A stretch of DNA of 64,000 bases. Source: Octopus sinensis. Its lineage: Eukaryota. The notes below the pieces were generated by a model that was not told where the DNA came from, ran no database searches, and saw only the letters and a program-made list of their open reading frames with translations. The stretch lies in NCBI RefSeq assembly GCF_006345805.1, contig NC_042997.1:205840001-205904000 (forward strand), written 5' to 3'. The position numbers and the translations under genes were made by a program. This document shows, piece by piece, positions 28,029 to 63,370 of this stretch (the stretch's first letter is position 1; each line of letters begins with the position of its first letter).

Positions 28029-28130
28029 GAAGAAGAAGAAGAAGAAGAAGAAGAAGAAGAAGAAGAAGAAGAAGAAGAAGAAGAAGAAGAAGAAGAAGAA
28101 GAAGAAGAAGAAGAAGAAGAAGAAGAAGAA
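28029..28130 (+). repeat. Pure (GAA)34 microsatellite
   Basis: Uninterrupted gaa tract at the point where the RTE is cut off. Confidence 0.95.
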
Positions 28131-28599
28131 GATTTTATGTTGGGTTTTCTTATATTTAGTCTAATTTCATTAATTTCATATCCTGTGCCATTTTTTCCCT
28201 GATCCTCTTTCATTTGATTTAGATTTTTAAATGTTATTCTTTTGGCATGTCTGAATGTTTCTGACGTTTTCAGATGGATATCTGTATGCGTCTGTTTTCT
28301 GAAGAACTGAAGCAGCACATAGTATTTTGTCTTACTCATTTTGCGGCAAACAAAACATTTACCATAGAGCCTCTGTGGCAGAGTAACCCAGTTTGTAATC
28401 ATACGAGAAAATCACTCAACATAGTTTGGTTGTTATCATTTTCATAAGGTCTGTGGGTACAAATTTTGTATACCAATATTGTTGGGAAAGAAAAAGAGTC
28501 AAAATTAAATGCAACGTATACATAATTGATTTTTTAAATGACTGAAATAATAAGTAATTAAAAATGAGACGTTTCATGTGAAACAACCTAATACGTATG

Positions 28600-40560: not shown

Positions 40561-40812
40561 GGACCTGGGGGACAAGAGTATGACAAGAGGACCTGACAAG
40601 AGGACCTGACAAGAGGACCTATATATATATATATATATATATATACGGGCAACACACACACATTGCATACGTATGTTTTGTATGCATACATGCTCGTGTG
40701 TGTGTGACTGAAGCCATTCACACATACATACATACATACATAACAACAGCTGTCTGTTTTTGCCTGTCAATCACTCAGTAAAAAGGCGAAATTTTAAAAA
40801 TCTGTTATCTCC

Positions 40813-42719: not shown

Positions 42720-43712
42720 CACTTGGAAATACGTACGTACACACACACACACACATTCTGAAAACGGAGAAGAAACAACAAATCCACGTAGTAATAATGT
42801 AAAGGAAAAGCATTGAAAGCGATTTTGTGAAATATTTGTAAAGCAATGGAGAGATGTAAAACGAAAACTTACCTCGTAACAACTCTGAGTAAAACTGAAA
42901 CTTGAATAATCTTTATCTAATCGTTTTTAAGCTGTCGATTGGTTTAACAACAACTTTGTATGACATCAATGGTTTTCCCAGAAAATACACTTACCCTCTG
43001 CCCTCTTTTATACAATTTATTTTCCAAGAAAACTTTGTGAGAAGTTTATCATTATCTTCCGAGAAAAAACACTTACCCTCTGCCCTCTTTTATACAATTT
43101 ATTTTCCAAGAAAACTTTGTGAGAAGTTTATCATTATCTTCCGAGAAAAACCACTTCCCTCTGCCCTCTTTTACACAATTTATTTTCCAAGAAAACTTTG
43201 TGATAAAGTTTTATTATTATCTAAAACAGACGACATAAAAAAAAAACAACTTTTCAAAAGAAGAAAAACCGGAGATAGTTTTTTTTATAGGAAATGAAGT
43301 CGAATGTAGGTTAGAGAAGATTTCACTTTCATTTTTGACACTTCCCTCGCTATACTTGGTGTTCTCTAATGGTGGCCACTAGTTGACATGGTTTTTCTTC
43401 AGTTTGTGTACGCTCACACATTTGTTGGCGTGTTTTTTCCACAAAAATTCAGTATGTGTGTGTACACACACACACACACGCACACACACACACATAATAT
43501 ACTTATGTAGCAGATAGCTACCAACTTTGTAAGCTAGGATTTGAAACCGAATCCCCATTTCCCCACAAGCCCCCACCTGTTATTCTCTCCTGTTACACTA
43601 GGAAATTTATGAAAGTATAGTGACTTCTTAGATCTTTTCGAAGCATCCATAATTTTAAAAAAAACATGATACATTGGAAAAATCCTTCGTATAGTTTCCA
43701 TAATTTAGTTAG
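42720..43712 (-). promoter_or_regulatory. Promoter / first non-coding exon module, copy A (putative promoter of the PARP14-like gene)
   Basis: Donor GAG|gtaagt at 42873/42872; ISRE-like agtttcagtttt ~42891-42903; six TTCNNNGAA at 42975, 43022, 43057, 43104, 43139 and 43185; TATAAAAG in the units; IRF-type GAAAGTGAAA at 43321-43336. The link to the gene is inferred from strand and position. Confidence 0.62.
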
Positions 43713-43899
43713 AAATAATATAAAATTTAGTTAGGAATTTACTCAACCAAATCGGTTTTCCTCCTCTTTGGTCCGTGGGTACCTACTCAAAGGCCTATCT
43801 CTTATTTCAAGTATGGGGTATCAGACACAACACAAACCTTACTCTTCCTATCTATCTATATTCTGTTAACCTGTCTCTCTGCAGTACTTACATACAGAC

Positions 43900-44110
43900 T
43901 AAGGTATGTTTCTTTATTACCCACAAGGGGCTAAACATAGAGGGGACAAACAAGGACAGACAAACGAATTAAGTTGATTACATCGAGCCCAGTGCGTAAC
44001 TGGTACTTAATTTATCGACTCCGAAAGGATGAAAGGCAAAGTCGACCTCAGCGGAATTTGAACCCAGAACGTAACTGCAGACGAAATACGGCTACGCATT
44101 TCGTCCGGTG
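43900..44110 (-). mobile_element. tRNA-derived SINE
   Basis: Same family as 46130-46345 (reverse complement). Confidence 0.8.
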
Positions 44111-45022
44111 TAATCCTACATTGTAACAACCGTAATAATATTCTAGTACATATAAATCGCAGTACGTGTGTGTATAATGACTAACGCATTCATTAATACT
44201 TTTGTTTACCTACCAATGTGTAAGAATTAGCACTTCCTTCTCAAAGCTTGGATTCGAAATCAGATCCAAGAATCATTGGTCGTAAAATACCAATGCACAA
44301 AAAGGCGCGAAATCAGAATCTCTTTGTTCTGACAAAAAATGATGGATCGTCTCCCTTCGACCTCTGACCCGAGCAGGTCAGGCGAAGTTTAACAGGACGA
44401 CCAGCGACCTACTGTACGCAATAACACTCTTGCGGTATATCTATTTTTCTGGCTATTTGAGATGTTATAAATAGAACGGAGAAATAGGTATCTAGAGAGA
44501 ACCCGAACCAACGTTTAAGAGAACGTCACGCATTTATGAGGACGACGAAAGAATAATCAGAAAGGTGACTCTGTACTGCATGATTTACACACACGCACAC
44601 ACACACACCATCAAACATATTCTGCTTTAATGTGTATCCTGTATTATGCATTCCTTTAATATGTATTATTTGCAACCACTATTTAATATGCATTTTGTAC
44701 AAGCGATGTGTAACATTGCTTACAAATTGATGTAGTGATAATAAATCTTTAATTTATTACAAAGCACTTATGTATTTATTAATACATCCACGCATCCACT
44801 ACAGCATTGTTTCACTTGAGGGATGCTTATTTACCCCTCCATTATGATATTTCGACTATTGTCCATTGTTGCAAATACGTTTTAGCATTGAGGTTCTAGC
44901 CTTTTTTAAACAATCACATATGATTCGTCCCAAAGAATCAACCTTTAAATAAGACTTTTACTACCACTAGCGAAAGTTATACATAAATTTCAGAAAGCTC
45001 CATACCAATTTCCTGCACACTG

Positions 45023-45640
45023 TTGAAAAGAGGTGCCCCTGCTAGAGCTACAACTATTCCAGGGCAGCTTGAAACATATACAGTGTGTGCTGCTGAAGCA
45101 AGGGCCATAGAAGCCTCAGAAGAGAGTGCTATTTGTCAGGCACATAATGCTGCATCCACTTCTGCCGCAAGGTTAACAGATGACAGTAACCATTGGATGA
45201 TGAGACTTCATTCTAATATTCACCAAAAGGCTCTTGTCCATGGCCTTTGGAAGCCATCGAGGTATCGGTGGGCATAAAAGGCACTGAACTGTGATCCTGC
45301 TGCGGATTACACCATTCATTGAGGGACTGTTACAGGGAATATGTCTGTAATATGCTGCTCAAACGGAAAGGTTCGCCTGACCTGCAAAACACTACTCAGC
45401 CTTTCCTCTCCTTGGTCAAGACCCTGATTCACAGCAATTTCTATAGGAAATTCACGCTTATAACTCCAGATGACAAGTTTTGGTCCCAAATCAATTCATG
45501 AAGGCTCATATATGCCAACATTCAAAATTCAGGGCCAATCCTATCATCGGATAGGCTCTATTCCTCCTGCCAACAACACTGAACACCGATTCCTTCAAAT
45601 TTACTTCATGGGAGATATCACTGAGCAAATGGCTCGCTGA
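45023..45640 (+). mobile_element. Helitron RepHel N-terminal fragment
   Basis: ICCSNGKVRL and QMTSFGP..YMPTFKIQGQSYHRIGSI..FLQIYFMGD. A single STPR-like unit (RAIEASEESAIC) lies upstream. Confidence 0.82.
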
Positions 45641-45719
45641 GCTCAGGTGGAACCTGGGACAATGTGAAAACAGTACCACCAAAGCAACTTAAACCATCCA
45701 AAAGACGTGTGCATTTGCC

Positions 45720-46130
45720 AGTTGGATTATAAGACGATAGTCTGATATTAAGAGTGCAGTATAAGATGTTTGCTGTTATGTACATTTAAAAATATTTTGA
45801 CTTTTTGCAGATAAAAATGCTTTTCGTATTACATAGACAATATTTTACGTAGGGTATGGGCAGTATCTATGAACACTATTATTTGAATTTTTTCCATTTT
45901 TGGACTTCCTGGTATCTGAGCTAGGTAGCAATCAGCCCCTTTTGCTATCAATCCGAGGGAACCTGTGACAATACATATAGTTTTACTCTTGAGGTTCCAC
46001 ATTTTGCCAATTTCTATTTCAAGATCTTCATACTTGCTCAGTTTTTGGTAGGTCTTGTCAAACACATTTATGTCGAGTGGGACAGTCATATGGATGAGGA
46101 GGCAAGACTTTTGTCTGGAAACCTTCAATA
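45720..46130 (-). mobile_element. R4/Dong-like 3' end
   Basis: QKLSKYEDLEIEIGKMWNLKSKTICIVTGSLGLI; UTR shared with 20730. Confidence 0.75.
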
Positions 46131-46345
46131 TAATAGCTGGCAGAATCGTTAGCATGCCAGACAAAATGTTTTGCAGTATTTCGTCTGTCGCTACGTTCTG
46201 AGTTTAAATTCCACCGAGGTCGACTTTGCTTTTCATCCTTTCAGGGTCGATTAATTAAGTACCAGTTACGCACTGAGGTCGATGTAATCGACTTAATCCC
46301 TTCGTCTGTCCTTGTTTGAACCCCTCTATGTTTAGCCCCTTGTAG
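46130..46345 (+). mobile_element. tRNA-derived SINE
   Basis: agctggcagaatcgttagcatgcc..ttctgagtttaaattccaccgaggtcgac head. Confidence 0.8.
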
Positions 46346-46660
46346 GCAATAAATATAATGTCTGGCCTATTTGCATATCTTTCTGTCAGTATGTGTGTGT
46401 GTGTGTATGCTGTGGTTACCAAACTCATAATTTACAACAGCCAGGTTTTGCAATAATATGACTCAAATAAATACTATGTGCACAAAGGTAAGTCCGTGCA
46501 TGTGTGCATGTACACAGAAACTGAAGGTTTGTGGGAAAAACCACACCAACTAGTGGCCACCATTGGAGAAAACCAGATAAAGTATATTGAGGGGAGTGGT
46601 AAAAATGAAAGTGAAATCTTTTCTAACCTATATTCACCTTCATTTCCTATAAAAACTATT

Positions 46661-47700
46661 GGATCTTTACCTTTTGACCGACACATTTAAAAAATAATTG
46701 TTTGTAACTAAACACTTTCAAACTTCGGACACTGGTAGAATGTGTCATATAAAACATCTTTTACTCTTAGCATTTATAAGAAAGAATTATATTTCCGAAG
46801 ATATTTCACGTTAAAGTAGTCCTGTTTTGGTAATTTCAACCAATCAATGATGTGTATTCAGCTGAATAAAATTACTGCTGTTGTTTGTCAACAAGAACTT
46901 CCGGCGGTGTATATTTCGATTGTCACTGTTATTTATGACAACCCTAAAACCCTAACCCTAACACCCTAACCATTATCCTAAAACCCTGAAATCTTAACCC
47001 TAACCCTAAAACGCTAACCATAACCCTAAAACCATAAAGCTAAAACCAGTACAAATGCATGAACGATGTCATAAATAACAGTGACAAACAAAATATAAGC
47101 CGCCGATAGTTGTTGTTCACAAACAACAGCAGTAATTTTATTTAGCTGAATACACGTCATTGATTGGTTGAAATTACGAAATATGACAACTTTATCACGA
47201 ATATACTTCGTAAATATAATTTTTTCTCAAAAATGCTAAGAGTATGCTTGTTTACCAACCACATGGTTCCGGATTCAGTCCTTGAGCAAGTGTCTTCTAC
47301 TATAGCCTCGGGCCAACCAAAGCCTTGTGAATGGATTTGGTAGACGGAAACTGAAAGAAGCTCATCGTATATATGTATATATATATATATGCGTGTGTTT
47401 GTCCCCCTAGCATTGCTTGACAACCGATGCTGGTGTGTTTATGTCCCCGTCACTTAGCGGTTCAGCAAAAGAGACCGATAGAATAAGTACTGGGCTTACA
47501 AAAGAATAAGTCCCGGGGTCGAGTTGCTCAATTAAAGGTGGTGCTCCAGCATGGCCGCAGTCAAATGACTGAAACAACTAAAAGAGTAAGAAGAGAGTAA
47601 AAGATGTTTTATATGACACATTCTACCAGTGTCCGAAGTTTGAAAGTGTTTGATTACAAAAAATTATTTTTTAAATCTGTAGGTCAAAAGGTAAAGATCC
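46661..47700. mobile_element. Foldback MITE of the Merlin family with a telomere-like core
   Basis: TIR ggatctttaccttttgacc / ggtcaaaaggtaaagatcc; 8-bp TSD aaactatt (46653-46660, 47701-47708); arms inverted over ~280 bp; ccctaa-like core 46941-47048. Confidence 0.92.
47245..47599 (+). mobile_element. 5'-truncated SINE nested in the MITE right arm
   Basis: Interrupts the arm at agagta, which is duplicated on both sides. Confidence 0.85.
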
Positions 47701-47958
47701 AAACTATTTCATGTTTTTCTTCTTTTGAAAATTTTTCTTTATGTTGGCCATTGTAAATAATTATAAACTTTTATGGGAAAACTTTCGTAGATGTAAATTG
47801 TATAAAAGAGGGCAAGTGTTTTTCTCAGAAAAAACATTGATGTCATACAATGTTATTGTAAAACCAATGGACGGTTTTAAAACCATCAAATTAATATTCA
47901 ACTTTCAGTTTTGCTCAGAGTTGTTACGAGGTAAGTTTTTGCTTTCTATCTTCCCGTA

Positions 47959-48362
47959 GGCGCAGGAATGGCTGTGTGGTAATTAGCTTGTTTACCAACC
48001 ACATGGTTCCGGGTTCAGTCCTATTGCGTGGCACCTTGGGCAAGTGTCTTCTACTATAGCCACGGGCCGACCAAAGTCTTGTGAGTGGATTTGGTAGACG
48101 GAAACTGAAAGAAGCCTATCGTATATCTGTATATATATATATGCGTGTGTATGTTTGTGTCTGTCCCCCTAGCATTGCTTGACAACTGATGCTGGTGTGT
48201 TTATGTCCCTGTTACTTAGCGGTTCAGCAAAAGAGACTGATAGAATAAGTACTGGGCTTACAAAAGGATAAGTCCCGGGGTTGAGTTGCTCGATTAAAGG
48301 CGGTGCTCCAGCATGGCCGTAGTCAAATGACTGAAACAAGTAAAAGAGTAAAAGAGAGAGAG
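47959..48362 (+). mobile_element. Full-length tRNA-derived SINE
   Basis: A-box tggctgtgtgg, B-box ggttcagtcc, 3' ggcggtgctccagcatggcc..tgactgaaac and (aaaagag)n tail. Confidence 0.9.
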
Positions 48363-50894
48363 TCTCTCCATTGCTTTACAAATACTTTACAAAGTAGCTT
48401 TCAGTACTTTTTACTACATTATAACTACATGAATTTGTTATCTCTGAATTTTAAGAATATATATGTGTGTGTGTGTGTTTGTTTTTACACAATTACATTT
48501 CAGAAGGGGTACATAACAGCTTTATCGGGATTTAAGGTGTAAAATGGTTGTTACATCATTTTTTTACAATGATTCATTTTCTGTCTTAATTGTATTGCTT
48601 TCATTTTGATTTCTTGGGTGGGACATTTCTTTCTTTCCTGTCTTTATTCCTTTCTTTGCCCTATCATTCTTTGTTTCTTCTCCTCGTCCTCCTTCCTGTC
48701 AGCTTCCTCAAAACATACCTACATTAAAAGATTGCTTTAAAATTAATTTGATGATAAGATGATAGTCTGATGTTAAGATGGCAGTAAAAGGTGTTTGCTA
48801 TTATGTACGTTTAAAAATATTTTGACTATGTTAGCAGATTAAAATATTTTGGGGATTACATAGACCCGGTGCTCACAGGCAAAATATTTTTTTTCCCCAG
48901 TAATGAACTCATTTGCATACAAGCAATCAGAGCTAACCTTGGCCTTGTCATAACATTCGTGAATGTGTTAAAAACAACCAATCCCTTGGCAAAACGCACT
49001 CTACAAAGTTGAAGAACAGTGTTGTAAGTCGATCGATTGCCAAGTTATTCCTACATTTAGAAGAAGATAAGTGTAGTGGGTATATATGTTCAGTATCAAG
49101 TATTGATATGGCTGCGTGTATGTTATTACAATAGTTCATAAAGAGATGAAGAATAAATTTAAGACCTATATATTTACTACGTAAAAATATATTTTATTTA
49201 CTGGTCAATGATGATACATAGAATCAAAATGTAGAATCTAGTTGAATGGAGTAATCTATGCAAGAAAGTCCAGAGATAGAAAATGTAGAAATAACAGCTA
49301 AGTGGTGGTTTTCAGTCAGGTGGTGTAGATAATAGACTGATAAAGCAATGACGTGAATGGCTCTAAGTCTAATTGACTAAGAAGCGAAGAGCTGGGTTAG
49401 CAAGCTGTTTTTATTAATGGAACGTTAGACATTCTAGAAACTTCCAAGAGAAATGCTAAGCTTCTTGAATAATTAAGAATCACTTCTCACGAGGGAGGTT
49501 ACTCTATAAACATTATTGCAAGATAGATCATTCAGCTATTTAGCTACAGACTACTACACAAGTAATTAGATAGATTTACATCTATACTTAATGTTGGATT
49601 TTGTTTGGGCCCCATGTGGTAAAGATGTGGATGGGGAAAATGTGGGTAGAGGGGGATGTGCTAGCAACTCTCTCCCCTTACCGTTTTACAAAGTAAACAA
49701 CACAACTACACAGAGGCAGCCATGGTCGAAACAAGAACAAGAACAACAAGCATTATTAAAAGAGAAAAGAAGCATGGTCATTCCTTACACAAGTGACCTT
49801 ATCGCCCATCACTTATGTACTCATAAATTATTTTGATAGCTGAGTTCTGATTGGGTATATGTAAATGAGTTCATAACTGGGGTCCAGAACTCTCGTGGGA
49901 AAAAAAATTTCACAAGCTGCTCACCGATGATGCCGTGAATGTTGCCAAGTTGTGTAATTTACTAGAAAATGTAAATGAGTGTAGTTTCCTAATTTTTTGA
50001 CTGATTTTCTACATTCCTAATTTTAAATGTTGATGTTGATCTGAGAACATCGTAATCAATATGGTGTTGTGTCGTTTTGCGCCCTCTTGGCATATATCAG
50101 TGGGTACATGTTGTATCACTAATTTCAGTCTGAGCGTAGGTACCTAATGTTAGCTCCATATAGAGATGGTGCTCAATTGATCTATGACGATGGTGGGGGG
50201 TGGAATGTGGTGCTTATGTGAGACCTGCTATGCTGTACTCACAGAGTGGCATACACCATTCTATGCCTGACTGGCTGTACAGTGATACACAGTATGTGGA
50301 TTTTCAAAGCGAGCTCTGTTTGGGTGTATGCAAATGAGTTCATTACTGGGATCTGGAACTCTCGTGGGAAAAAAAATTTCGGCCATGGGCCACATTGTGT
50401 CTCGCTTAATATTTTCATGCGGTCCACTGGCAATTCAAATTATAATTCTATGTTATTTTCTGGTTATATTTTTGTTTACTTTGTTAGAGCATGATGAGAA
50501 AATCATTCTCAGAGTGTATTATTTTGAACGGACCAATGGAAACATCAATAGAGGATGGTAAAATGAGGGAGGTCATGTTGGCTTATGACACAGAATGGCT
50601 GACTATACATTGTAGAATGAACCATTTTGTTGATACATAATTAACAGCCATTATTTCAGTTTCAAATCTTTTGCAGTCGGATCAATATTGATTGTGTAAT
50701 TTCCTAACCTTGTTTACAATGTCAAGTGATAATGGCTTCAGTGGTACTTCAGTGTTTCTAGTCCAGGCTAAGCCTAATGCTAAGAAGCTAATGCAGAAGA
50801 GCCTATTTATTCTTCGTTTGTTTCTGATTTCTGGAATATTGATATCAACATGATTAGGTAATAATTTTAATTGTTAATTTTAACAGCCCATTAT

Positions 50895-51385
50895 CAGGTC
50901 ATGGCATCTCATACTAAGAAGAGAAAAATAACAGAAGAAAAGAGAAAGTTCAATATCCTATGGACAGAAAAATATTTTGTAATTGAAACATCCAATAATA
51001 TTATGAGTCACAATAAATTAATTAAACAGAGAAAGACGGGAAATGAAAATAAATGAATTGAAGAAGAAGCTGAGTTCACAACAAAACAGTTTCAAAAAAC
51101 ATGTTGGGAAAACTGGTACATGTACAAAAGTTAGTTATTTAATAGCTGGGAAATTGGTAAGCCACTGATTGATGGCAAATTAATATAAAGAAGGTATTGT
51201 AATTGCTTTTAATGAATATTGTCCAAAGAAGGTGAAATTATTCAATGAAACAAGTCTGTTGCATCAGACAATTGGTGGAAGAATTGATGACTTATTTGAG
51301 AGTATTTTGGGTACATTGCAGACTTAATTATCTAAATGTGTTCATTACAGGTTAGCATTGGACAAAAGTACTGATCAAAGTATGA
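50895..51385 (+). mobile_element. hAT (SPIN/Charlie, GTF2IRD2-like) transposase remnant
   Basis: KKRKITEEKRKFNILWTEKYF, then frameshifted LSSQQNSF, CPKKVKLF, TIGGRIDDL and LALDKSTD. Confidence 0.72.
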
Positions 51386-52319
51386 CTCCTTCATGTGTCG
51401 CCTGATTGACTATATGAATGACTAGGCCATAGCCCACACCGCCAGATGTTTTAAGCATCTCTGCAGTGATTCCTGATGGGCTGGGGGGCTTTCCCTGTCT
51501 TCATACTCTTTATTGCTGTCAATTTGGATAGTTGGTCCCTCTGTTGTGTTGACATTCGGCAGACTCTCTTTCTCCTATTCATTTAGCAACCTTTCATAGT
51601 GGCATCTCCAAGTCTCTCTCCTTGCTGTACTGCCTCATTAAATGCAAGTGAGCCATTATCCATGCGGACACATGTGGTTTATATGGGGCATAATAATATG
51701 CCTAAATTATTATGCCCCATATAAACCACACTTCATTCTTAAATACTAAATTTAAATATTCCTAATTCTAAGAATTTACATCTTGTTTGCCTCCCTTCCA
51801 TAATATTTCAAAGATTTTAGTATTTGTGCCAATTAATACCTTATTTACTAAGAATATTCTCATAAAAAGTTCTTCTAAAACCTCCTTAATTAATATTCAA
51901 AACCTGATAAAGAATAGATTATATTATCTAGGTTATTTAGTCTCTATTTCTATGAAAGTCTTATTATTAATATAATTTTTAACCAAAAGTTTGATCATTT
52001 CTTCACCCGATATTAAACACTAATCTTACACGACAACTCCCATGATAAGGAAATATTAATTTTAATCTAGTAATTATAAAATTATAATGTAATTATTAGG
52101 TATTTTCTTATAGCAGCTTATCTCACCTATTATAAATAAGCTAGGTATATTCTATAATAAATTTTTAGAACACAAATCTAGTCTACCCCTTATCTACAAT
52201 ATTCTACAATTTTATTTTTCAATTCACTTATTTAAATTTCCTTCACTAAAATTTTAAACCATTTTAGCTCACTCATTTACCCACTATATCATCTTACTGT
52301 TCTCTTTCTATTCCCCTCC

Positions 52320-54610
52320 TCTCCTTCACTCTGTCTCTCTCTCTTCCCCTCCTCTCCCTCACGCTGTCTCTCTTCCTCTCCCCTTCCTCTACCTCCCTCT
52401 GTCTCTAACACCCCCATACCCCTCTCTCTCCTTATATCACCCTCTCTCTTTCCTCAATATCTCCCTCTCCCTTTCCCTATTTCCCCTCCGTGTTTCTTCT
52501 TTTCTACTTCCTCTTCTTCACTCTGTCTCTTTCTCTTCTCCTCCTCTCCCTCACTCTGTCTCTCTTTCTCTCTAATACCTCATACCCCCACTCTCTCCTC
52601 ATATCACCCTCTCTCTTTCCTTTATATTTCCCTCTCTCTTTCCCTATACCCATCCCAACTGTGTTTCTTCTTTTCTACCTCCCTCTATCCTCTACTTCCC
52701 TCTGGGCTTAAAAACGAAGATGGCACCAAAGTGGGAGAAGAAAGAATTAAATCTTCTGCAAGCATGGGTAATTGCTAGTGGCGATCTGTCAAACAACAGC
52801 ATCACTACTGCACTGAAGAACAATGGCTTTCACAGAACCATTGACCAGATAGAGCGGAAGAAGAGTGAATTTAACCGGTCTTATATGCTCATAAGACCAC
52901 GCATTGACACTCTGGATGACATAATCGAAAACTATTGTGGCAAGGCTGATAAGGAGGGAGAAGATGAAAAGGAAACAAAACCCGGAAGTCTCCTTGATCT
53001 AGTAGTTCCTCAAAAGAATGAATCACCCACCCTCGTGAACGACCAGGCAGAAATGGATAGGGGAGCCAAGGAAGTAGTAACTAGGAGCCCCTCTGTGCCA
53101 GTGGTCCTACAAAGGAATGGATCCCTCACCCCATTAGAAAACCAGAGGAAAAAGTTCCCACCACAAGGAAAGGAAGGACGGAACACAAAAATAAAGAAGG
53201 AAAGGAAGGAAAAGGCAAAAATGAAACAACCAAAACCGAAACCCCAACCCACCAAACAAACAACAGAAAACCCCATGGAGGATCCAATGCCATCCAAAAC
53301 CCTACAGGAAAGATGAAATTTGGAAGGCATTCAAGAACCTGCAAATTTTACTTGCAAGGCAAATGTTGGCATGGGGAAGATGACAAAAACTGCTTGTTTG
53401 CCCACCCAACACCCCGCCAAACCTACAGGGTCCTTAAAGAGAAAAACTTCACCGAGGAAAGACAAAAAATGTCTCCAAGGAAAAAATTTACAAAAGAAGT
53501 GTGCTCCTCAGATGTTCTGCGCAATGCAGCAGCTGAGCAAGAGTCTTTTTTGTGCATGGCGCAAAAGATTTGTACAACAGCTGACCTGGGTACACCAAGC
53601 ACAAACAAGGAACCTTTGCCCACAACTATGCAAGACCACCACTGTCAACAGACACGGGATGGCCTCCCTTAACTCCTGCACAGTCGTCACCCCAATACTT
53701 TTACTAAATATTGGGGGCCTGTTCCATCATAATAAAAGCAAAATTTCTTTCCTGAGAGATCTTACTGCATGCAATCAATCCCTATGCATAGCACTCGTGG
53801 AAACTCACTTCAGCCCTGATATAGAGGATGCAGAAGTACACGTACCAAACTATGCCATACTGCAAACAGACAGAAGGGAAAGGAGCCATGGTGGAGTTGC
53901 TGTATACATTCATGATAACCTCACACCCAGGTCTTACTGTCACACTCAAATTCGGTATGTGATACTCTAATTGTATACATAAGACAACATAATATCGTCA
54001 TATGCAATACATATTGCCCACCGGATGCTCCAAACCACATAGGCAAGTTTGAAGATTGCCTCACAAGAATTAAAGAAATCCTCATGAATCTGGAACACCA
54101 TGCGACTATATTTCTTATGGATGATTTCAACTTTCCCAACGTCAAATGGCCCGAAGGTCTCAGACTCTCAGGAATGATTCATTGCAAGCAAGCACAGGTG
54201 GAGTCCCTGCTCAACCTCACCAATGCCTTATTCATGGAGCAAGCTGTAATCAGACCAACTAGGGCGAATAACATTATGGATCTCTGCTTCACAAACAATA
54301 TGGACATCATTCATGATGTGAAAGTGACACCGACATTAGTCTCAGATCACAACATAATAGAGCTGTCTATGGTTGGGCCGAAAGTAACTAGAGACATACA
54401 GCCTAAAGGAAGCACCCGAAATCTTTCCAATCTGAACTTCCACAAAGCAGATTGGAAATCAATCCAAAAAGAGATCCTCAGACAGTACTGGCTGAAATGT
54501 CTCTCCACACCAGACATTGACATGAAACTAGAATATTTCATGTCGCTTGTGCAAGCCATATGCCAGAAATATGTCTCAGAGCACAAGGTCAAAACAAGCA
54601 GAATTTGCAA
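52320..54610 (+). mobile_element. CR1/L2-like LINE 5' half: CT-rich UTR, ORF1 and endonuclease; 3'-truncated
   Basis: ORF 52720-53316 starts with a Myb/SANT-like WEKKEL..RTIDQIERK. The next frame has a CCCH finger, CKFYLQGKCWHG..CLFAHP. APE motifs IALVETH, GGVAVY and DDFNFP are homologous to 40000-40560. Confidence 0.85.
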
Positions 54611-55341
54611 AGCGTTGGATTGTTCATCCACTAATAGGGAATATGATATGGGTTTAGACCGTCATGAGACAGGTTAGTTTCATCCTACCAATGTATTTCG
54701 CGCCACTGGTTGACATGTGACACGAGGGTCTCTACGTAGTCCGCGCCACTGTTTGACACGTGACGCGAATTGTCTCGACTTATTTCGCGCCACAGTCGCA
54801 AATCAACCAATCAAGACCTTCGGTTAAAATTCCATTTTCTGAAGTTCTGTGAGCCAACCAAACAGTTTATAAAGCAGGGTTCACTGAGACTTTCGTCTTT
54901 AGTTCTAGTTCTTCTAAGATCTAACTTAGGCCACCTGCTGCTCAACTTAGAGATATGCGATTGTCTCTGCTACTACCTGTTGCTATGCTGATACAAACAT
55001 GAACTGTGAACCGAATTCCATTGTTAATTCTATAGTCAGTACCTTTTATGCCTCACGAACACACAGACACAAAAACATGCTAACGCTTACGAACTCCTAA
55101 CATTGACACGATCGTAAAATATGTAAAATAAATAATATTTATCTCCCAACAGAAGACTCGTTGTCAATTCACTTATGTTCTATTGTTACTGTATGTATTT
55201 ATGGCTTGTAATAATTAGTTAAGAGTAGAACCGCGTGCGATCGTATTTCCTACACGATACGACCACATGTGCTCCTATTTCTTATAACAGCATCACCTGC
55301 GTCAGACTATAAAATAATCTCGGCAGATAATACTGTAGCAC

Positions 55342-57672
55342 CAAGAGGAACTTCTTTCGGGGTTTCAGTGGAGCCCTGCAAATCTTCTCGATATCCAGGG
55401 ACACCTGCTCCACCGAATCTAAACCAAACTCTTGACTCGAGCTCAAAGTCCCTGTAGGTAGGACACCTCGCCTGGTTCTACCTTTTTCATCTTGCTACTA
55501 TCGAGACTCGGCAGAGTGCTATCATGGACAAGGTAAGACTTGCTCCAGCCGCGAATGGAGAACCATGCACACTTACCGATGTTGATACCTAGCCCGACTG
55601 CGCGATAGAACTCCAGGCATCTATCCACAAAAGCCTGGAGGCCATCACACGAGCCAGTGACTAAGACCAAATTGTCTGTGTACACTAGTCCTGCCATACT
55701 AATCCCCTCAAGACTGAAACCTCTGCCGTCTGACAAAATGTCTAACAACCGAATTTCGATGGGCTCGCTAAGTTGCCCACCAACTGAGAATCTGGTAGTG
55801 TTACTTTCAGAATCCCCTCCACGAGCGCTATTACATGCTCATGGAAGGCAAGCCTTGGCAGTCCCGCATACACCAACGAGTGCAAAACTGTATCGAAGGC
55901 CTTGGCGAGATCCATGAAAGCCACCTCCAGACGCGGTATTCTCAACCGTGCTGCCCTCCCAATCGCTCGACTGACCAGCTGCCGCAAGAGAAAAGAATTC
56001 TCGCTGCAGCCGTCAGCCTGGATAAATCCGCATTGAGCAGGATTCAGGGGAGTTACCTGAAACATCTTTTGGCGACCATTTTCGGAAAAAAACGATATTC
56101 CATAGGATCATCTGTACTTTTCGGAATCAGGATGGATTTTCCTCGTTTCAGGATATCGAGAACCTTTCCGGTCAACATACAGTTACACACGTCGGTGAGG
56201 ATACACGTGTCCATGGACTTGACCTTACAAACGCTAAGTCCGTCTGGACCCGCCGCTGAGGAAGGATTCATTTGCCTCCGACTAATTTTCACCTCCTCCT
56301 TAGAAAACGGTCACAAAATAGGATCGTTATCTACCTTGAAGGAGGAAGGGTAGTCGTTATAGAGCTCTATAACGAGCATAGGGATTGGGCATCCTTGCTT
56401 CGTATCCTTGCCAAGTACCACTGTAAGGAGCTTCTTCCTATCCTGTTTATATAACTCCTGGTGGAGTGCAAGCTGATGTTGCTTTGCACATCACCGAAAC
56501 TGGGACCGGTTTGGGCCTTTAGATCTTTGGTACCCTCCAGAGGCCTCTATCCTGTGCAACCTATATTGCTCCACACTTCTTGAAAAGGAATCCCGTGGTC
56601 GTATCCTCAATGTGTTCCAATAGGGCCTCGGAGAAGACCACTGACCAACGGGTATGCCCAGGACATGCAGCATCAAGGAATCGATCTCTTTAGTCAGGAC
56701 AAGAAGATCTACCCTCGACTTGTGAATGGGAGTCAGCAACGGACAGCCCTGACACTTGAAGACTCTCGCGAGCCCTCTTGGCCAGAGCTGCCCTCTTGGA
56801 TCCTATCTGTTTTGCAGTTTTGCCAGGCAGGAACATTGCTACATTAATGTGTCTAACCCCGGTTGCCAACAATTCAGCTTCCTTCTCAACGAGGACCGCT
56901 ACTTCCTTGTCTGACCAGCAGCCCTTGCGTATCCGGCCAGAAGCTGCTCGGTTAACACGCTTTATTGCCAACTGTTCCTTATAAGTGGCGATACTGTGCT
57001 CATTAGCAGCAACAGGATACTGATAGCACACATGTTGCGACCTACCTGCAACCGTCAAAAAAGAATGGCTGCAGTGGTCGCATCTGAAGGAAGATTGAGA
57101 AGACCAGATTCACCAACGCACTTGCCAACGTGACACCTCATAGAATGGAGGTGTCCACTCTCCCTACCACGTTTACTACATCTGTAGACTGGCTCACGCT
57201 GTGCCTACAGTCCAAATGTTCTCCCCAATGGTAGGGAGAAGAGAAGCGCTGAGGACATAGCGGAAGGCTATGGAGCAAGAAGCGCAAAGAATAGATAGCA
57301 AAAATTCATCTGCCAGAGTGGGGCCAAACATTTCCACAATCCCCTCCCGGATCACTTCTAAAGTAAGAAAGTGTTTGTAATCGAGAGGGTCTTGAGTCAA
57401 GTCTGGCTAGATTACCTGACGTACTCTCTAGTATATATGAAAGAAGAAGATGTGGTCTCCGGGAGAAGTATCCGCCTACTGTTGCAACAAGAGGAACTTC
57501 TTTCGGGGTTTCAGTGGAGCCCTGCAAATCTTCTCGATATCCAGGGACACCTGCTCCACCGAATCTAAACCAAACTCTTGACTCGAGCTCAAAGTCCCTG
57601 TAGGTAGGACACCTCGCCTGGTTCTACCTTTTTCATCTTGCTACCATCGAAACTCGGCAGAGTGCTATCATG
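55342..57672 (-). mobile_element. Defective R2-like non-LTR element (zinc fingers + Myb + RT) between 185-bp direct repeats
   Basis: FRCDHCSHSFLTVAGRSQH finger; CCHC-like YRCSK..CHVGKC; Myb WSDKEVAVLVEKEAEL..RHIN..PGKTAKQI; RT SAAGPDG, QCGFIQADGC and FMDLAKAFDTV. The GVxQGD region appears deleted. Confidence 0.8.
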
Positions 57673-58445
57673 TATGTATGTACATATACAAGTACGTTTG
57701 TATGTATGTAAGTTTTGTTCCTGTTCCTCTTCAGCAAGTTCAAGCTGGTTGCTAATGAATTGACAAGAGTTTTTGAGTTAAAAGAGTTCCCAGCGTTTGT
57801 AAATGTGTGGTTGAGTTGGAGTGCAGGTTGAACTCTTGATGCCCAGACTCAAGCACGTGCATCTATTCACCTAAAGAATCTCTGATGGTAAATCTTTGGA
57901 ATGTCTTACAAAATCTTCCCTGTGCCACGCAGAGATCGGATTTTGGAGATCTCTTTTGATCTTTCTTTGGAAAAGCCTAACAGTTCTAGGTGGTTGTGTA
58001 AGTGTGTAAGCACATAGCCTAATGCACCTATATTATAGGTACAAACGAGAATTTATAGTCAGGGCCCAAGGGCTGAGTGCTCTAAATTAATTCATCGTGT
58101 TTTCTTTTTCCTTGACTTTCAATATCCTCTCTCGGCGGAATGCAAGGTATGCTTCACCGGTCCAGGGGAGGCTACTCTTCCTCAAAATGCTGCTTACAGG
58201 ATGTATTGCTTTTTCTGGGTATGTATTCTCGCTTAGGTTTCAGTCACTGTAGGAGGTGGTATGATGTACCCGATGCTGGCCCGTACTAGGAAATGGCAGG
58301 GTCGGTTTGTGCTAGATTACCTGACGCAAACCACTGGGAACTCTTTTAACTCAAAAACTCTTGTCGCTTCATTAGCAACCAGCTTGAACTTGCTGAAGAG
58401 GAACAGGAACAAAACTTACATACATAAAAACGTACTTGTATACGT

Positions 58446-58451
<6 letters not shown>
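57672..58451. repeat. Cassette with ~120-bp inverted repeats
   Basis: 57672-57793 is the reverse complement of 58334-58451; ~540 bp spacer without a recognisable ORF. Confidence 0.85.
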
Positions 58452-58482
<31 letters not shown>

Positions 58483-58859
58483 AATACATACATTCACAGA
58501 CGCATACACTCATATATACATATGTACATACATACATACATACACACTCGTACATACACACACGCATACACACTCATACATATATACATACATACACACA
58601 CACATTCATACATACATACTCACATACATACACACTTACATATACACATATATATACATATATATGGTGGCTGTCCCCTCGTTATCGAGTATGGCCATTG
58701 CACGAAGCTTAATCAATGTTGTTATCGTGCAATGCCTGTGCAAGAAGATTTTTTTAAAGTGAGGAAAGGCTGTGCACTGAGTCAATCCGACTCACTAAGC
58801 AACAGCAGCCATAATCCAAAAAGAAGAGCAAGTCAACATCATCGGTAACCACTGAACCG

Positions 58860-59218
58860 CAAGTTTTATGTCGGAGTTATCCCAGTTACCTGAGTTACCT
58901 TCTCCTAGAGGGATGCCCTAACAAAGGCTAGGAGTCCTTCACTCCCAATGGTTTAACCGGGCGATCGGGTATTCATTCCGATTATTTCTATGTCCCTGCA
59001 CATGATACAGCCTTAAGACATTTATTGGATGTCCATTGACTCTCAAGAGTTCCTTCACCCTTTGACGGGTTTTGTTTTTCATCCCGCAGGGTGTCCAATA
59101 AACACCCTCCTCACCAAGCAAGTTTGGTGTGGTTGCAGGTTTAGTCGCCGACGACCCGACCATGCAAAATGTGGTACTGGGTTTACATGTCACCAGTAGC
59201 ACTCGAAAGTGACCTGAC
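58860..59218 (-). mobile_element. Possible RTE-type 5' UTR remnant
   Basis: The minus strand contains tagggcatccctctaggagaaggtaactc, similar to my recollection of RTE 5' UTR ends; embedded in (TACA)n. Confidence 0.4.
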
Positions 59219-59298
59219 ATACATACATACATACATACATACATACATACATACATACACACACATGCATACACACTCATACATACATATGTAGTGTA

Positions 59299-59936
59299 TG
59301 TTGCAGGCATGGCGTGGATTTCAGTTAACAGTTCAACAGCTCCTTTTCTCATGGTAAAACCTTCTGACTAATTTTGGGTAGTTATAAAAACAAGAACTCC
59401 GTAAGCAAATGCAGTTATTGAGAACCAACTTGGTGAGAGCGACCATCAGTTAGTGAACGGCCAACTAATCATAGCCACAAGCAGGCAGCTACCAAAGACA
59501 AATGGTCAGAGAGAGAAATGAACTTTACAATCAGCAACTATGAGACACAACTTCCTTCGACTCTCCCACTCTCACTGGCTCACTTTATTGTCTCTTACAA
59601 TATCACTCCATCTCTATCTGTAATTTCTACTACACAATGACAAGAACACAAACACAAACTATACAAGCAAAACCTACATCTATCTTTACTTCGCATGCTT
59701 TACGATTTTATCACCTGCCCGTCGAGGCAAGGTATTGTATAATGTAATATATTTTCTTCACAACTTCAGTCACTGTTCTTTCATCTTTGCATAATGGCAA
59801 TCAATGAAGAACAAACCATTACAACTGGTGACGACCCCGACGTTTCATCCTATTGTTTATCAATTATTGTGTACCATATTAATATCAACTGTTACAAAAT
59901 AATCTCTGTCGTTACAAATTAACTTCTACCGTAACA
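59299..59936. mobile_element. Solo LTR-like element in microsatellite
   Basis: TGTTGCAG...CCGTAACA termini, the same right end as 36577-37668; flanked by TACA/CA repeats. Confidence 0.45.
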
Positions 59937-62440
59937 CACACACACACACAGACACATACACACACACATGGGAAATTCTGTGTGTAGGTGTGTCTGTTTG
60001 CGGAGTTGTTAGCAAACTCCTCCTACATCTTTTTAACGATTTTGATGAAACTTGACATGTGAGTAGAACTATGTCTGGAAACCTCATGGCATACACAGAT
60101 TGTTGAAAAAAAAAATCGATAATAGGCCCCTGGAAGGGATCCTTATATATAAGTAATATATTTTATTTTAACAGCAAAAGGAAATAACCCATCATTTTCC
60201 GAAACCCTTTGGTATAAATCAAATTGAATATGCTTATTTCTTAGTATTTGAACTATTTTAGTTATTTTCTCAATTTATCCAGTGCAACCCTTAAACAAGT
60301 AAATAGTATTTTCCTAAATAATAAATCCACTTATTTCGGTTAGTGATTTATTCACGAATATACCAACACTAGTACCGCTGAGGGTAATATTCTCTGGGAA
60401 CGCACAAAAGCCCTTTTCAGAGTTATATACTTTGAAGTGTTATTATCTCATACCTCTTATTACGTAACATGTTTCACAATTTTAGTATACATACCGTATT
60501 AGTATTTCTTCCCATGTTCTATATATTCTGGGAATGCAATAAAGTCCCTTTCAGGGCTACTTTATTTGAACTCTTACTATCGGGTTACTAATTATTACAT
60601 AGCTGACTTCACAATTTGGGCATTCGTAACTTATTGGGAATTCCTAAAAACAAGATCCTGTGTAAGACAGTTCGGTATTCTCTGTAAATGCACAAAACCG
60701 TTTTAAGGGCTACATACTTTGTATTGCTGTTACTGGATTAGTGAAACAGTTATGAGAACGGAACCAAGGGATAAGCCTGCTTTCCTGGGAATTACCAGGT
60801 ACGTCAGCTTGTATATACATACATGTATGTGAGTATGTATGTATGTATGGTATGTTTGTGTGTATTTGTATGTATGTATGTATGTGTGTGTGTGTGTGTG
60901 TGCATGTTATGGTCACCAATCATAAGAACGAACTCACCAATTACAATTGTCGGGGTTTGCAATCATATGAGTCGAATAAATGAGTGAAGAAGGACAACAT
61001 TATTTGTTTGTTTGGATGGTCATTATATTTATATGATTATTACGGTGGTGTAAGAATTAACACTTCCTTCTTCAAGCCTAGATTCGAAACCGAATCCAAG
61101 AATTCTCGGTCGTCCAAACCACGACGATCAACAGGCGCAAAAAAAGGTTTTCTTTGTCCTGTCAAAAATTGATTCATCATCTCCCTTTGACCTGCCACCT
61201 CAGCATGTCAGGCTAAGTTCATCTGGATAGGGGTTGACCAATTTAGGTACAAACTCTGCTGCAGTATGTCTGTCTTTCTAGCTGCCAATTTTTATTATAA
61301 ATACGAGGGTGAAACAGAAAGGTAGGCAGACAGACGGGAGCAGACAGACGAGATAGATCTATCTACGACCCAAAGGTTTTTGGCAGACGACAGAGACAGA
61401 GAGAACTGTTCGAAGTGCCGATAGACTGCTGTTTCGAATGAAACACGCACACACACAAACATACTCACTCCTAATATGACTTTCCACGAATGTACTCTGT
61501 ATTTCTAGCAACTCGTAGCAGTTGCCTACATTTTGTATGTAGTGCACCTATAACCAATCAAACCCTGTAAATAAATTCATTTCAATTATGAATCGGTTTA
61601 CGTATTTGTTTACATACACACTTAACCACTACAGTGGTTACAATATAGGATTGTTTGTATACACTGGTCATTAGCCATTATGGTCCATCGTGTATGGTAG
61701 TTATCTTCATCTGTGAGTGACTACTAGAGAAGGACAGGCTAATAGAATAAGGGTAGGTAGAAAGAGTAAGGTTTGTGTTGTCTTGCCTTGAAATTAGAAA
61801 GTTAGAGGCCCTTTCAGTAAACATCCACTGACAAACGAGAAAGAAAACCGACTTGGTTGAGTATATATGTATATAAAGGGAAAGTTTACGAAAATAAACC
61901 AAAGACGAAGGCAGGTGGTGTACAAACAAACAAATGTATTAGTATAGCGCTCAGGAATAGAAAAAGTCTTTTACGTCTCGAGCCTACGCTCTTCTACAGA
62001 AAGGGACACAGAAAAAAAACAAGGAGAGAAAAAATGCGTGTAGTAGCTAACAATCTATCATGGCGTCTTGACTTCGGACAATGGTCAGACGCGAGAGGGA
62101 CAGTAGGGGAGATAACAGGGTCAAGTGACTTCTAATACGTAGGTGCCCCCAACACAAAGGTGCGTGTGTGTATAAGAGAGTATGTATGTGCGTGTGAAAG
62201 AGGTCTGGTGGTCTGGACGTGTGTGTGTATGTATGTGTGGGTGTAAAGATGTGGGGATGGGTGTGTGGGTGGTGTGTTGTGAAGTGATATGTGTATGTAT
62301 GTGTAGGTGTAGAGATGTGGGGATGGGTGTGGGGGGAGGGGTATGGGATAGTGGTGAGGCATGTGGGATAGGGGTGAGGTGTGTGGGGGAAGGGGGTGGA
62401 AGGTGGAGTATATATATATATATATACATATATATTACTC

Positions 62441-63370
62441 CTAACTAAATTATGGGAAACTATATAACGGCTTTTTCCTCAGTATCATGCGTTTGACATA
62501 TGGATGCCTTGAAAAGATCTAAGAAGTCACTATACTTTCATAAATTTCCTAGTGTAACAGGAGAGAATAACAGGTGGGGACTTGTGGGAAAATGGGGATT
62601 CGGTTTCAAATCCTAACTTACAAAGCTGGTAGCTATCTGCTACATATGTATATTATGTGTGTGTGTGTGTGTGCGTGTGTGTGTGTGTGTACACACACAT
62701 ACTGAATTTTTGTGGAAAAAACACGCCAACAAGTGTGTGAGCGTACACAAACTGAAGAAAAACCATGCCAACTAGTGGCCACCATTAGAGAACACCAAGT
62801 ATAGCGAGGAGAGTGTCAAAAATGAAAGTGAAATCTTCTCTAACCTACATTCGACTTCATTTCCTATAAAAAAAACTATCTCCAGCTTTTCTTCTTTTGA
62901 AAAGTTGTTTTTTTTTTTATGTCGTCTGTTTTAGATAATAATAAAACTTTATCACAAAGTTTTCTTGGAAAATAAATTGTGTAAAAGAGGGCAGAGGGGA
63001 AGTGGTTTTTCTCGGAAGATAATGATAAACTTCTATCACAAAGTTTTCTTGGAAAATAAATTGTATAAAAGAGGGCAGAGGGTAAGTGTTTTTTCTGGGA
63101 AAACCATTGATGTCATACAAAGTTGTTGTTAAACCAAACGACAGCTTAAAAACGATTAGATAAAGATTATTCAAGTTTCAGTTTTACTCAGAGTTGTTAC
63201 GAGGTAAGTTTTCGTTTTACATCTCTCCATTGCTTTACAAATATTTCACAAAATCGCTTTCAATGCTTTTCACTACATTATAACTACGTGGATTTGTTGT
63301 TTCTTCTCCGTTTTCAGAATGTGTGTGTGTCTGTGTGTCTGTGTGTGTGCACGCGCGCGAATTTCCAAGT
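62441..63370 (+). promoter_or_regulatory. Promoter / first-exon module, copy C (inverted duplicate of copy A), pointing out of the window
   Basis: IRF-type site 62821-62833; GAS at 62962, 63009, 63046 and 63093; tataaaag 63064; ISRE-like agtttcagtttt ~63174-63185; donor GAG|gtaagt at 63203/63204. Confidence 0.65.

Follow-up and report, generated by a model that had tools for sequence, protein, structure and literature searches.

A module of about 1 kb is present three times in the window, by which we mean the stretch of 64,000 nucleotides of Octopus sinensis that we analyzed (CM016859.1:205,840,001-205,904,000). In both O. sinensis and O. vulgaris, this module lies 5' of and sense to PARP14-like paralogs at every locus with enough 5' flank. 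It is conserved unevenly along its length, and the units that carry its motifs vary in copy number. Judging from the sequence, the module is very probably the promoter and the non-coding first exon of locally duplicated PARP14-like genes. Its putative inducibility by IRF and STAT factors is suggested by motif matches and their conservation, and we would put the chance of that part at slightly under even. Taken as one statement, that the module is the shared 5' control region and non-coding leader exon of the PARP14-like family and is IRF/STAT-inducible, our proposal seems somewhat likely to be right.

Three copies of the module

The original prediction was that the module occurs three times in the window, and we found all three copies again at the predicted positions. 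Copy A (42745-43715, minus strand) faces the left-hand PARP14-like gene, and is its putative promoter and non-coding leader exon; the O. vulgaris ortholog is at 3436-2546 of locus L005. Copy B (46540-47930, plus strand) is an older copy that is split by a transposon. Copy C (62438-63330, plus strand) faces the right-hand paralog. The last exon bases (42873 in A, 47930 in B, and 63203 in C) are the same as predicted. A and C are an inverted pair: their alignment runs from 43715/62438 to 42745/63330 and is 97.8% identical (18 mismatches in ~810 aligned bases), and A has one 82-bp unit more than C. B shares 78% of 398 aligned bases with A and C, and its identity to all other module copies is 70-78%.

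In copy A (minus strand), the IRF-type site AAAATGAAAGTGAAA, with the core GAAAGTGAAA, is at 43320-43334. About 45 bp 3' of it is a TATA box, CCTATAAAAAAAA (43283-43291); this second TATA box was missing from the original description. Next, at 42975-43222, an 82-bp unit with two TTCYNRGAA (GAS-type) sites and one TATAAAAG-like box is repeated in tandem (3.0 copies). The array ends with the GAS TTCTGGGAA (42975-42983), which is followed by TGATGTCA (42961-42968), CCAAT (42938-42942), and the ISRE-like AGTTTCAGTTTT (42891-42902), with an Inr-like TCAGTT inside it. The leader exon ends at 42873 and the donor GT is at 42872-42871, so the proximal block of this copy is 42873-42983. Copy C (plus strand) has the IRF site at 62820-62834, 2.0 copies of the 82-bp unit at 62933-63101, TGATGTCA at 63108-63115, and AGTTTCAGTTTT at 63174-63185. 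There are six GAS sites in A and four in C, all four of the latter in the 82-bp units.

Copy B (plus strand) is in two parts. The distal block (46540-46660) has the IRF-type site (46603-46617) and a TATA box (46648-46654). The proximal block (47701-47932) has the GAS TTCTCAGAA (47822-47830), TGATGTCA (47838-47845), CCAAT (47864-47868), TCAGTT at 47905, and the donor GT (47931-47932). Between them is a 1,040-bp foldback (long inverted repeat) transposon (46661-47700), with an 8-bp target duplication (AAACTATT), CCCTAA-like repeats in the centre, and a nested SINE-like insert. Even so, the 20-mer AAAAATGAAAGTGAAATCTT is unchanged in A, B, and C, as had been predicted. The predicted order of the motifs is also right in every copy, but the TATAAAAG box and the second GAS, TTCTTGGAA, are not kept in all paralogs.

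The IRF element core GAAANNGAAA is present in every copy, as GAAAGTGAAA or, in the O. vulgaris ortholog of A (A'), as GAAAATGAAA, and it reads GAAAGTGAAT in the unit beside the module at locus L004. The predicted ISRE-like element is present; the proximal AAAACTGAAACT differs from the ISRE consensus at one base, and it overlaps the initiator-like TCAGTT. The canonical ISRE GAAANNGAAACT has no exact match in the modules. TTCYNRGAA occurs 19 times in the window, as compared to 7.5 ± 2.7 times in shuffled sequences, and 11 of the 19 are inside the modules, which add up to 1.6 kb and whose copies are not independent of each other. GAAA-rich and TTC...GAA motifs are frequent in AT-rich DNA, and away from the modules their frequency is about that expected by chance.

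The candidate core promoter elements (two TATA boxes, CCAAT, and the initiator-like TCAGTT) imply three differing start sites. If a TATA box were used, the GAS, CRE, CCAAT, and ISRE-like elements would lie within the transcript instead of 5' of it.

Paralogous loci and uneven conservation

We searched for the module in 573 kb of sequence from O. sinensis and O. vulgaris; this sample is biased towards PARP14-like loci. Besides the window and L005, which has the orthologs of A, B, and C, four further PARP14-like loci have the module upstream in the sense direction: L002 and L009, with two tandem copies each, and L003 and L004. The sampled paralogs of O. sinensis are on CM016859.1 at 205.84-206.05 and 211.6 Mb, with one more on an unplaced scaffold; those of O. 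vulgaris are on OX597814.1 at 5.7, 8.2, 206.5, and 216.4 Mb. Within this locus-biased sample, 11-mers that are specific to the module were not found outside PARP14-like 5' regions, while SINE-like repeats from the module region had 150-325 matches in the same 573 kb. Homology between the paralogs extends into the flanks and the intron, as segmental duplication predicts; for instance, the homology of C to L003 and L004 runs ~400 bp into the intron. Because the module is confined to PARP14-like 5' regions in these 573 kb, we view it as the 5' region of a gene family that was spread by segmental duplication, not as a dispersed transposon.

We also considered that the module might be a transposable element or a solo LTR, with its own promoter, that is near these genes by chance. 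TATA boxes, internal tandem repeats, and clusters of transcription factor motifs are LTR-like, and there is precedent in mammals, where interferon-inducible enhancers derived from transposable elements are known. However, the boundaries of the module lack terminal repeats or target duplications, and A and C are inverted rather than direct repeats. Together with the absence of copies elsewhere in the sample and the continuing homology of flanks and introns, this makes a transposable element very improbable.

We computed column conservation of the module across five paralog lineages. The IRF core, one STAT-type palindrome, TGATGTCA, CCAAT, the initiator/ISRE-like element, and the ACGAG|GTAAGT donor are conserved much above the rest. 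The IRF site has 14 invariant columns out of 15 and has survived intact even in B. All columns of TGATGTCA (8/8) and of CCAAT (5/5) are invariant, as are 22 of the 24 columns of the exon end and donor, and ACGAG|GTAAGT was found in all 15 module copies (15/15). The GAS palindrome TTCNNNGAA that is kept everywhere is the one directly 5' of TGATGTCA: its half-sites TTC and GAA are fixed, and its spacer is TGG, TCG, or TCA. The 95-bp proximal block, which extends from TGATGTCA to the donor, has 73 invariant columns out of 91 (80%), versus 28 of 61 in the adjoining intron and a background of 51%; elsewhere than in the proximal block, 46-51% of columns are invariant. A and C are 97.8% identical, as compared to 93.5-95% for the bodies of the left-hand and right-hand genes. 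Taken as a whole, however, the module is 76-88% identical between paralogs, and some introns of these genes reach 90-93%, so we argue for constraint from the unevenness within the module only.

The motif units vary in number as well. In O. sinensis, A has three of the 82-bp double-GAS units and C has two; in O. vulgaris, A' has one and C' has three. At L004, a 30-bp unit with the IRF motif is repeated 25.7 times (a 26-copy array). Tandem arrays can arise through slippage without selection.

The same data bear on whether the module might be a real promoter and leader exon that is not immune-inducible. Other factors would then act on it (NF-Y at CCAAT, bZIP/ATF proteins at TGATGTCA, or a PRDM1-like repressor at GAAAGTGAAA), and the IRF and GAS matches would be incidental. 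This would fit with TGATGTCA and CCAAT being as invariant as the IRF site, with the loss of the TTCTTGGAA site and the TATAAAAG box from several paralogs (the TATAAAAG box is unconserved in L002 and L003), and with the overlap of the ISRE-like element and an initiator-type TCAGTT. But the IRF core is perfect in B, which is the most diverged copy, and has been amplified 26-fold in one paralog, and the GAS half-sites are fixed despite the varying spacer. Furthermore, this gene family responds to interferon or viruses in vertebrates (PMC9087173) and is among the antiviral genes of oysters (PMC12803857). We consider a promoter without immune induction to be unlikely. The conserved IRF-type and STAT-type motifs make interferon-like induction plausible.

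The genes on either side

The left-hand gene does encode a PARP14-like protein, as predicted: its four exons in the window match RRM_PARP14_3 and RRM_PARP14_1 from Pfam, with 84.5 and 54.7 bits (the cut-offs are 24 and 27 bits). The first coding exon, with an RRM, is at 23033-23229 on the minus strand, with the acceptor CAG| before 23229 and the ATG at 23212. The further exons on this strand are 9505-9269, 5604-5371, and 313 to below 1, which runs off the window. All four visible exons are intact and have good splice sites. Neither the O. sinensis nor the O. vulgaris protein annotation includes this gene, and, as its 3' part is off the window, it may be a pseudogene.

The predicted join of 42873 to 23229 was said to put an in-frame stop and no ATG before the start codon at 23212. 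There is an in-frame TAA before this ATG, but there is also one upstream ATG, which lies within TGATGTCA. The final 148 nt of the leader have no other upstream ATG, and the junction gives a clean 5' UTR. In other paralogs, small intermediate exons ('MAEK/MEKR' and 'MTSQTTT') lie between the module and the first RRM exon. Neither is present in the window, and only because of this is a direct 42873-to-23229 junction plausible.

The paralog that was predicted to the right of the window turned out to be LOC115232391, which is on the plus strand and whose first coding exon is 9.8 kb past the window. In the O. vulgaris gene model of this paralog (P0005), ATGATTAG|GT is the first coding exon, and the splice that joins it to the 'KIPVEIMAEK' exon skips C. 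In O. sinensis, this exon end is at 50850-50857 (plus strand), between B and C. The P0005 exon indirectly supports plus-strand transcription that starts upstream of C, possibly at B. As to the rest of the family, paralog P0012 has three Macro stretches (by Pfam), and L006, L008, and L009 have gene models with Macro and PARP domains after those with RRMs.

Alternatively, the copies might be relics of a recent segmental duplication that are alike because of their age and gene conversion, with at least A and B inactive and the left gene decaying. The left gene is missing from the protein annotation of both species, it lacks the 'MAEK' exon, and its first intron is full of LINE fragments, along with a 4.5-kb satellite. 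A transposon splits B, and conversion between inverted repeats could account for the high identity of A and C. Between paralogs, the modules are also no more alike than introns are. However, mere relics seem inconsistent with the uneven conservation (80% invariant columns in the proximal block versus 46-51% elsewhere), which persists against B, at 78% overall identity. The intact visible exons of the left gene and the plus-strand exon between B and C also argue against decay. Overall, we think it quite unlikely that the copies are relics.

Returning to our proposal, the module would be a conserved 5' control region, with a short leader that ends in ACGAG|GTAAGT, of an octopus-specific, locally amplified PARP14-like family (with RRM, macro, and PARP domains). 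An inverted segmental duplication would have placed two near-identical copies back to back, 19 kb apart. Copy A would drive the left, minus-strand paralog, with the leader spliced over a 19.6-kb intron, filled with transposons and a satellite, to the RRM exon at 23229. Copy C would drive LOC115232391 on the plus strand, with the leader spliced over ~10.6 kb to a 'MAEK' exon past the window, and B may provide the right-hand gene with an alternative promoter that is more distal. Transcription would start ~30 bp 3' of either TATA box or else ~24 nt before the donor, at the TCAGTT initiator. IRF would be recruited at GAAAGTGAAA, STAT at TTCYNRGAA, bZIP proteins at the ATF/CRE-like TGATGTCA, and NF-Y at CCAAT. 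Like vertebrate PARP14, the PARP14-like family would thereby be switched on during an antiviral or interferon-like response.

Possible interferon-like control of PARP14-like genes

In vertebrates, PARP14 is a core interferon-stimulated gene, and IRF1 can drive it without STAT1 (PMC9087173). PARP9 and DTX3L share a bidirectional promoter that responds to interferon-gamma (Juszczynski 2006, as cited in PMC11251048 and PMC13224862). The promoters of vertebrate macro-PARPs resemble the octopus modules in the gene family (PARP14-type RRM, macro, and PARP domains), in having IRF-type and GAS-type motifs near the gene start, and in the head-to-head genes. In contrast to the single promoter of PARP9/DTX3L, octopus has a putative promoter in two or three separate copies, at distances of 3-19 kb, which arose by inverted duplication. 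Also, unlike vertebrate macro-PARP promoters, the octopus modules lack the canonical ISRE, and whereas the vertebrate genes have a known interferon response, that of the octopus genes is putative.

The statement that molluscs have no recognised interferon needs to be qualified, as a candidate IFN-like cytokine and a cGAS/STING-IRF axis have been reported in oyster (PMC8218723). Oyster antiviral genes are driven by IRF and STAT factors (PMC8218723, PMC5869526), and PARP14 is listed, beside JAK/STAT and IRF genes, as an antiviral effector in the response to OsHV-1 infection (PMC12803857). The oyster pathway (cGAS/STING-TBK1-IRF, CgIFNLP, and JAK/STAT) is, like ours, a mollusc system. The oyster work describes a trans-acting pathway and expression, without the architecture of a native PARP14 promoter, while our data are cis sequence from a cephalopod. 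Among the listed papers whose full text mentions both octopus and PARP14, we found no cephalopod cis-regulatory evidence for an interferon-like response.

In amphioxus and sponge, duplicated PARP14-like genes are tandem or nearby paralogs on one chromosome, as in octopus (PMC13224862, where Perina 2014 is cited). The octopus clusters differ in that the putative promoter and its leader exon were visibly duplicated along with the gene, in that one of the duplications is inverted, and in that the gene bodies are less similar to each other than the promoter copies.

More tentatively, and with more doubt than confidence, we speculate that cephalopods have an interferon-like IRF and JAK/STAT programme, into which an expanded PARP14-like family has been wired by a shared composite promoter. 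The output would be tuned by the copy number of binding-site units (one to three double-GAS units, which differ between sister species, and the 26-copy IRF array), and conversion or selection would maintain the similarity of the duplicated promoters.

Outside of vertebrates, there is little cis-regulatory evidence for an interferon-like response. This locus is a compact and well-delimited test object, with a conserved proximal block of 95 bp, one IRF site, and one conserved GAS. Natural variants are at hand too: the copy that is split by a transposon, modules with one, two, or three of the units, and the 26-copy IRF array. If the module is not inducible, what is left is an ordinary duplicated promoter. 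If it is inducible, then IRF/STAT control of macro-PARPs would be older than vertebrate interferons, and this family would show promoter copy number evolving alongside an immune gene family.

Copies of the module in the window

The window contains three copies of a ~1-kb module, which would comprise a promoter and a non-coding leader exon: copy A (42745-43715, minus strand), copy B (46540-47930, plus strand), and copy C (62438-63330, plus strand). Reading and aligning these regions bore out the three copies of the original prediction, as well as the order of the motifs within them and the last bases of the exons (42873 in A, 47930 in B, and 63203 in C). The 20-mer AAAAATGAAAGTGAAATCTT, which was said to be unchanged even in B, is indeed identical across all three copies. 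A and C form an inverted pair: aligned from 43715/62438 to 42745/63330, they have 97.8% identity (18 mismatches in ~810 aligned bases) and also differ by one 82-bp unit. B is the most diverged copy (70–78% identity to each other copy). Its distal and proximal blocks are split by a long-inverted-repeat (foldback-type) element of 1,040 bp (46661-47700), which has arms of ~280 bp, an 8-bp target duplication, degenerate CCCTAA telomere-like repeats at its centre (46940-47048), and a nested SINE-like insert (~47245-47593). Rfam and tRNA scans of the modules detected no structured RNA.

All three copies have orthologs in Octopus vulgaris. There, positions 41109-64000 of the window are matched colinearly by L005 (OX597814.1, reversed), at 97–98.5% identity, and this locus extends 52 kb further to the right.

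The PARP14-like genes on either side

Copy A faces a PARP14-like gene on the minus strand with four clean exons: 23229-23033 (with the ATG at 23212), 9505-9269, 5604-5371, and 313 to the window edge. These encode RRM domains of the PARP14 type (RRM_PARP14_3, 84.5 bits; RRM_PARP14_1, 54.7 bits). The gene's relatives are proteins from O. sinensis, O. vulgaris, and O. bimaculoides that are labelled as PARP14-like or PARP10-like. The gene itself is without a match among the annotated proteins (the closest hit has 93% identity over 59% of the query), and the protein clusters include no transcript-derived members of the PARP14-like family. A full-length paralog from O. vulgaris (P0012, 1477 amino acids) has three macro domains too, followed by PARP catalytic models.

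A paralog was also predicted to the right of the window, and it exists: LOC115232391 (P0001), on the plus strand, in L001 (O. sinensis GCA_006345805.1, CM016859.1:205,903,842-205,964,702). Positions 60-159 of L001 are identical to the window's final 100 bases, which places the window at CM016859.1:205,840,001-205,904,000. The 'MAEK' exon of LOC115232391 is 9.8 kb past the window's end. Further downstream are a tandem paralog (P0011, in L006) and a Macro+PARP model.

In other paralogs, small 'MAEK/MEKR' exons follow the module and precede RRM exon 1, and two O. vulgaris loci (L003 and L004) add a 'MTSQTTT' exon. We sought both kinds of exon between A and 23229 and neither is in the window, so a direct splice from A to 23229 is plausible. 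As predicted, joining 42873 to 23229 places an in-frame TAA before the ATG at 23212. The sole upstream ATG in the last 148 nt sits inside TGATGTCA, and it opens an upstream reading frame of 17 codons.

RRM exon 1 is present in the left gene, which has no 'MAEK' exon; the right-hand paralogs (P0001, P0005, and P0011) have the 'MAEK' exon and no RRM exon 1 (L001, L005, and L006 compared to positions 22834-23434 of the window). The duplicates have thus lost different exons at their 5' ends. The coding sequence of the O. vulgaris gene model P0005 begins in an exon on the plus strand, which ends between B and C, at window position 50857; the model splices over C. This hints at a transcription start upstream of C, possibly at B.

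Within the left gene's putative first intron is a 69-bp satellite (28900-33500; ~64 or more copies, 97–99% identical) that gives long spurious ORFs on both strands. Fragments of LINE-type endonuclease and reverse-transcriptase ORFs, on both strands, occupy this intron and the B-C spacer (25800-28200, 38237-40766, and 52720-57110). One endonuclease-like fragment ends with 92 bp that match eukaryotic 28S rRNA (54584-54675; model positions 2885-2984, 53 bits); these may derive from rDNA and have been carried by a retroelement. The left gene's intron between exons 3 and 4 contains a tandem array (520-1782; period ~115 bp), which is far longer in the right-hand paralog (~5 kb, L001 45539-50486). 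Also, a 585-bp segment between B and C (60229-60813) recurs with ~99% identity at L001 4467-5051, 5.5 kb before the 'MAEK' exon; O. vulgaris has both copies (L005 19489-20073 and 27787-28370).

Distribution of the module across paralogs

BLAST against all of the fetched loci found the module solely upstream of PARP14-like paralogs, and in the sense orientation every time. (In the fetched loci, each model begins at its first coding exon, so the annotation covered is that of coding exons.) Besides the orthologs of A, B, and C, there are two tandem copies each in L002, from O. sinensis, and L009, its ortholog in O. vulgaris, 8–10 kb before the first coding exon, and one copy each in L003 and L004, 2.9 kb before the first coding exon. 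L007 (P0013) has no module within 10 kb, and its first coding exon differs. The flank of L006 ends before the expected position of the module. Similarly, the O. bimaculoides model (L008) begins at exon 3, with exon 2 lying 9.5 kb upstream, and the 10-kb flank ends short of the 5' region.

We also considered that the module might be a transposon or LTR. Across 573 kb, we found no copies beyond the 5' regions of PARP14-like genes: the module-specific 11-mers TGATGTCATAC and ACGAGGTAAGT occur in 15 places, all of them modules, and SINE-like repeats from the A-B spacer have 150–325 hits in the same sequence. In this sample, which is biased towards these loci, the distribution of the copies and their boundaries led us to reject such an origin. 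Between paralog loci, homology extends upstream of the module and ~400 bp into the intron. This distribution and this continued homology fit a gene's 5' region that was copied by segmental duplication, and not a mobile element.

The best-supported reading is that the module is a duplicated promoter with a leader exon. This upholds part of the original interpretation, namely the promoter and first exon (from the comparative evidence, that is, the sense location upstream of paralogs) and the right-hand paralog.

Conservation and proposed control by IRF and STAT

In an alignment of five paralog lineages (A, B, L002, L003, and L004) with 357 ungapped columns, 58% of the columns are invariant, and these are distributed very unevenly. 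The invariant columns include 14 of 15 in the IRF site, all 8 of TGATGTCA, all 5 of CCAAT, 10 of 11 in AGTTTCA(G)TTTT, and 22 of 24 at the exon end and donor. From TGATGTCA to the donor, 73 of 91 columns are invariant, versus 28 of 61 for the first 100 nt of the intron. In the GAS immediately 5' of TGATGTCA, the TTC and GAA half-sites are fixed and the spacer is TGG, TCG, or TCA. The TTCTTGGAA site and the TATAAAAG box, by contrast, have been lost from several paralogs. Whole-module identity between paralogs (76–88%) is not above that of some same-gene introns (90–93%), so the argument for constraint is based on how uneven conservation is within the module, and on B. A and C are more similar to each other than are the bodies of the left and right genes (93.5–95%), which could reflect selection or conversion. 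Some of the differences between A and C are common to O. sinensis and O. vulgaris, so their duplication is older than the split between these species.

Another conserved motif, TAGTGGCCACCA(Y)T(R)G(R)GAA, lies on the 5' side of the IRF site, ~40 bp away, in every copy that reaches that far (window 43360-43380, 46558-46578, and 62775-62795; L002 1281-1300). We considered that it might be a CTCF site and dropped this idea: by eye, only 6–9 of 12 core positions match the vertebrate CTCF core, and the resemblance is to just half of that core.

The 82-bp unit contains two TTCYNRGAA sites and a TATA-like box. It is present in three copies in A and two in C, and in O. vulgaris, in one copy in A' and three in C'. 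In L004, a 30-bp unit with an IRF-type core, CAAAAATGAAAGTGAAGTCTCTCCAGGCGT, forms 25.7 tandem copies (96% match; 6001-6770, from OX597814.1 at ~216.44 Mb) that abut the module of P0003. (The O. vulgaris annotation calls a 273-amino-acid ORF through this array.) Amplification of these units is equally compatible with tuning of inducibility and with neutral slippage.

TTCYNRGAA occurs 19 times in the window, compared to 7.5 ± 2.7 after shuffling; the eight that lie outside the modules match the chance rate. Exact AAATGAAAGTGAAA is found in the window's three modules only. Since the copies of the module are not mutually independent, each ancestral module should be counted as having a single conserved IRF site and a single conserved GAS. 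TTCYNRGAA presumably resembles STAT5-type sites, and we take TGACATCA to resemble the ATF-2/c-Jun site of the interferon-beta enhancer.

Transcription might start at any of three candidate positions. Two of them lie ~30 bp on the 3' side of an element, either the TATA box next to the IRF site or the TATAAAAG box. The third is a TCAGTT initiator ~24 nt before the donor; by reading, it is preceded by CCAAT (about -45) and TTAAAAA (about -34).

We infer that IRF and STAT may control the module, given the motifs and their conservation and, by analogy, what is reported from vertebrates and oysters. In vertebrates, PARP14 is a core interferon-stimulated gene, and IRF1 can drive it (PMC9087173). In oysters, PARP14 is among the antiviral effectors, alongside JAK/STAT and IRF genes (PMC12803857). 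An IFN-like cytokine has been reported there as well, as has a cGAS/STING-IRF axis (PMC8218723, PMC5869526).

Promoters of the IRF/STAT type are of a known kind. Clustered duplications of PARP14-like genes were already known from other animals (PMC13224862). On the regulation of PARP14 in cephalopods, literature searches gave nothing specific. The locus matters chiefly for being so directly testable.
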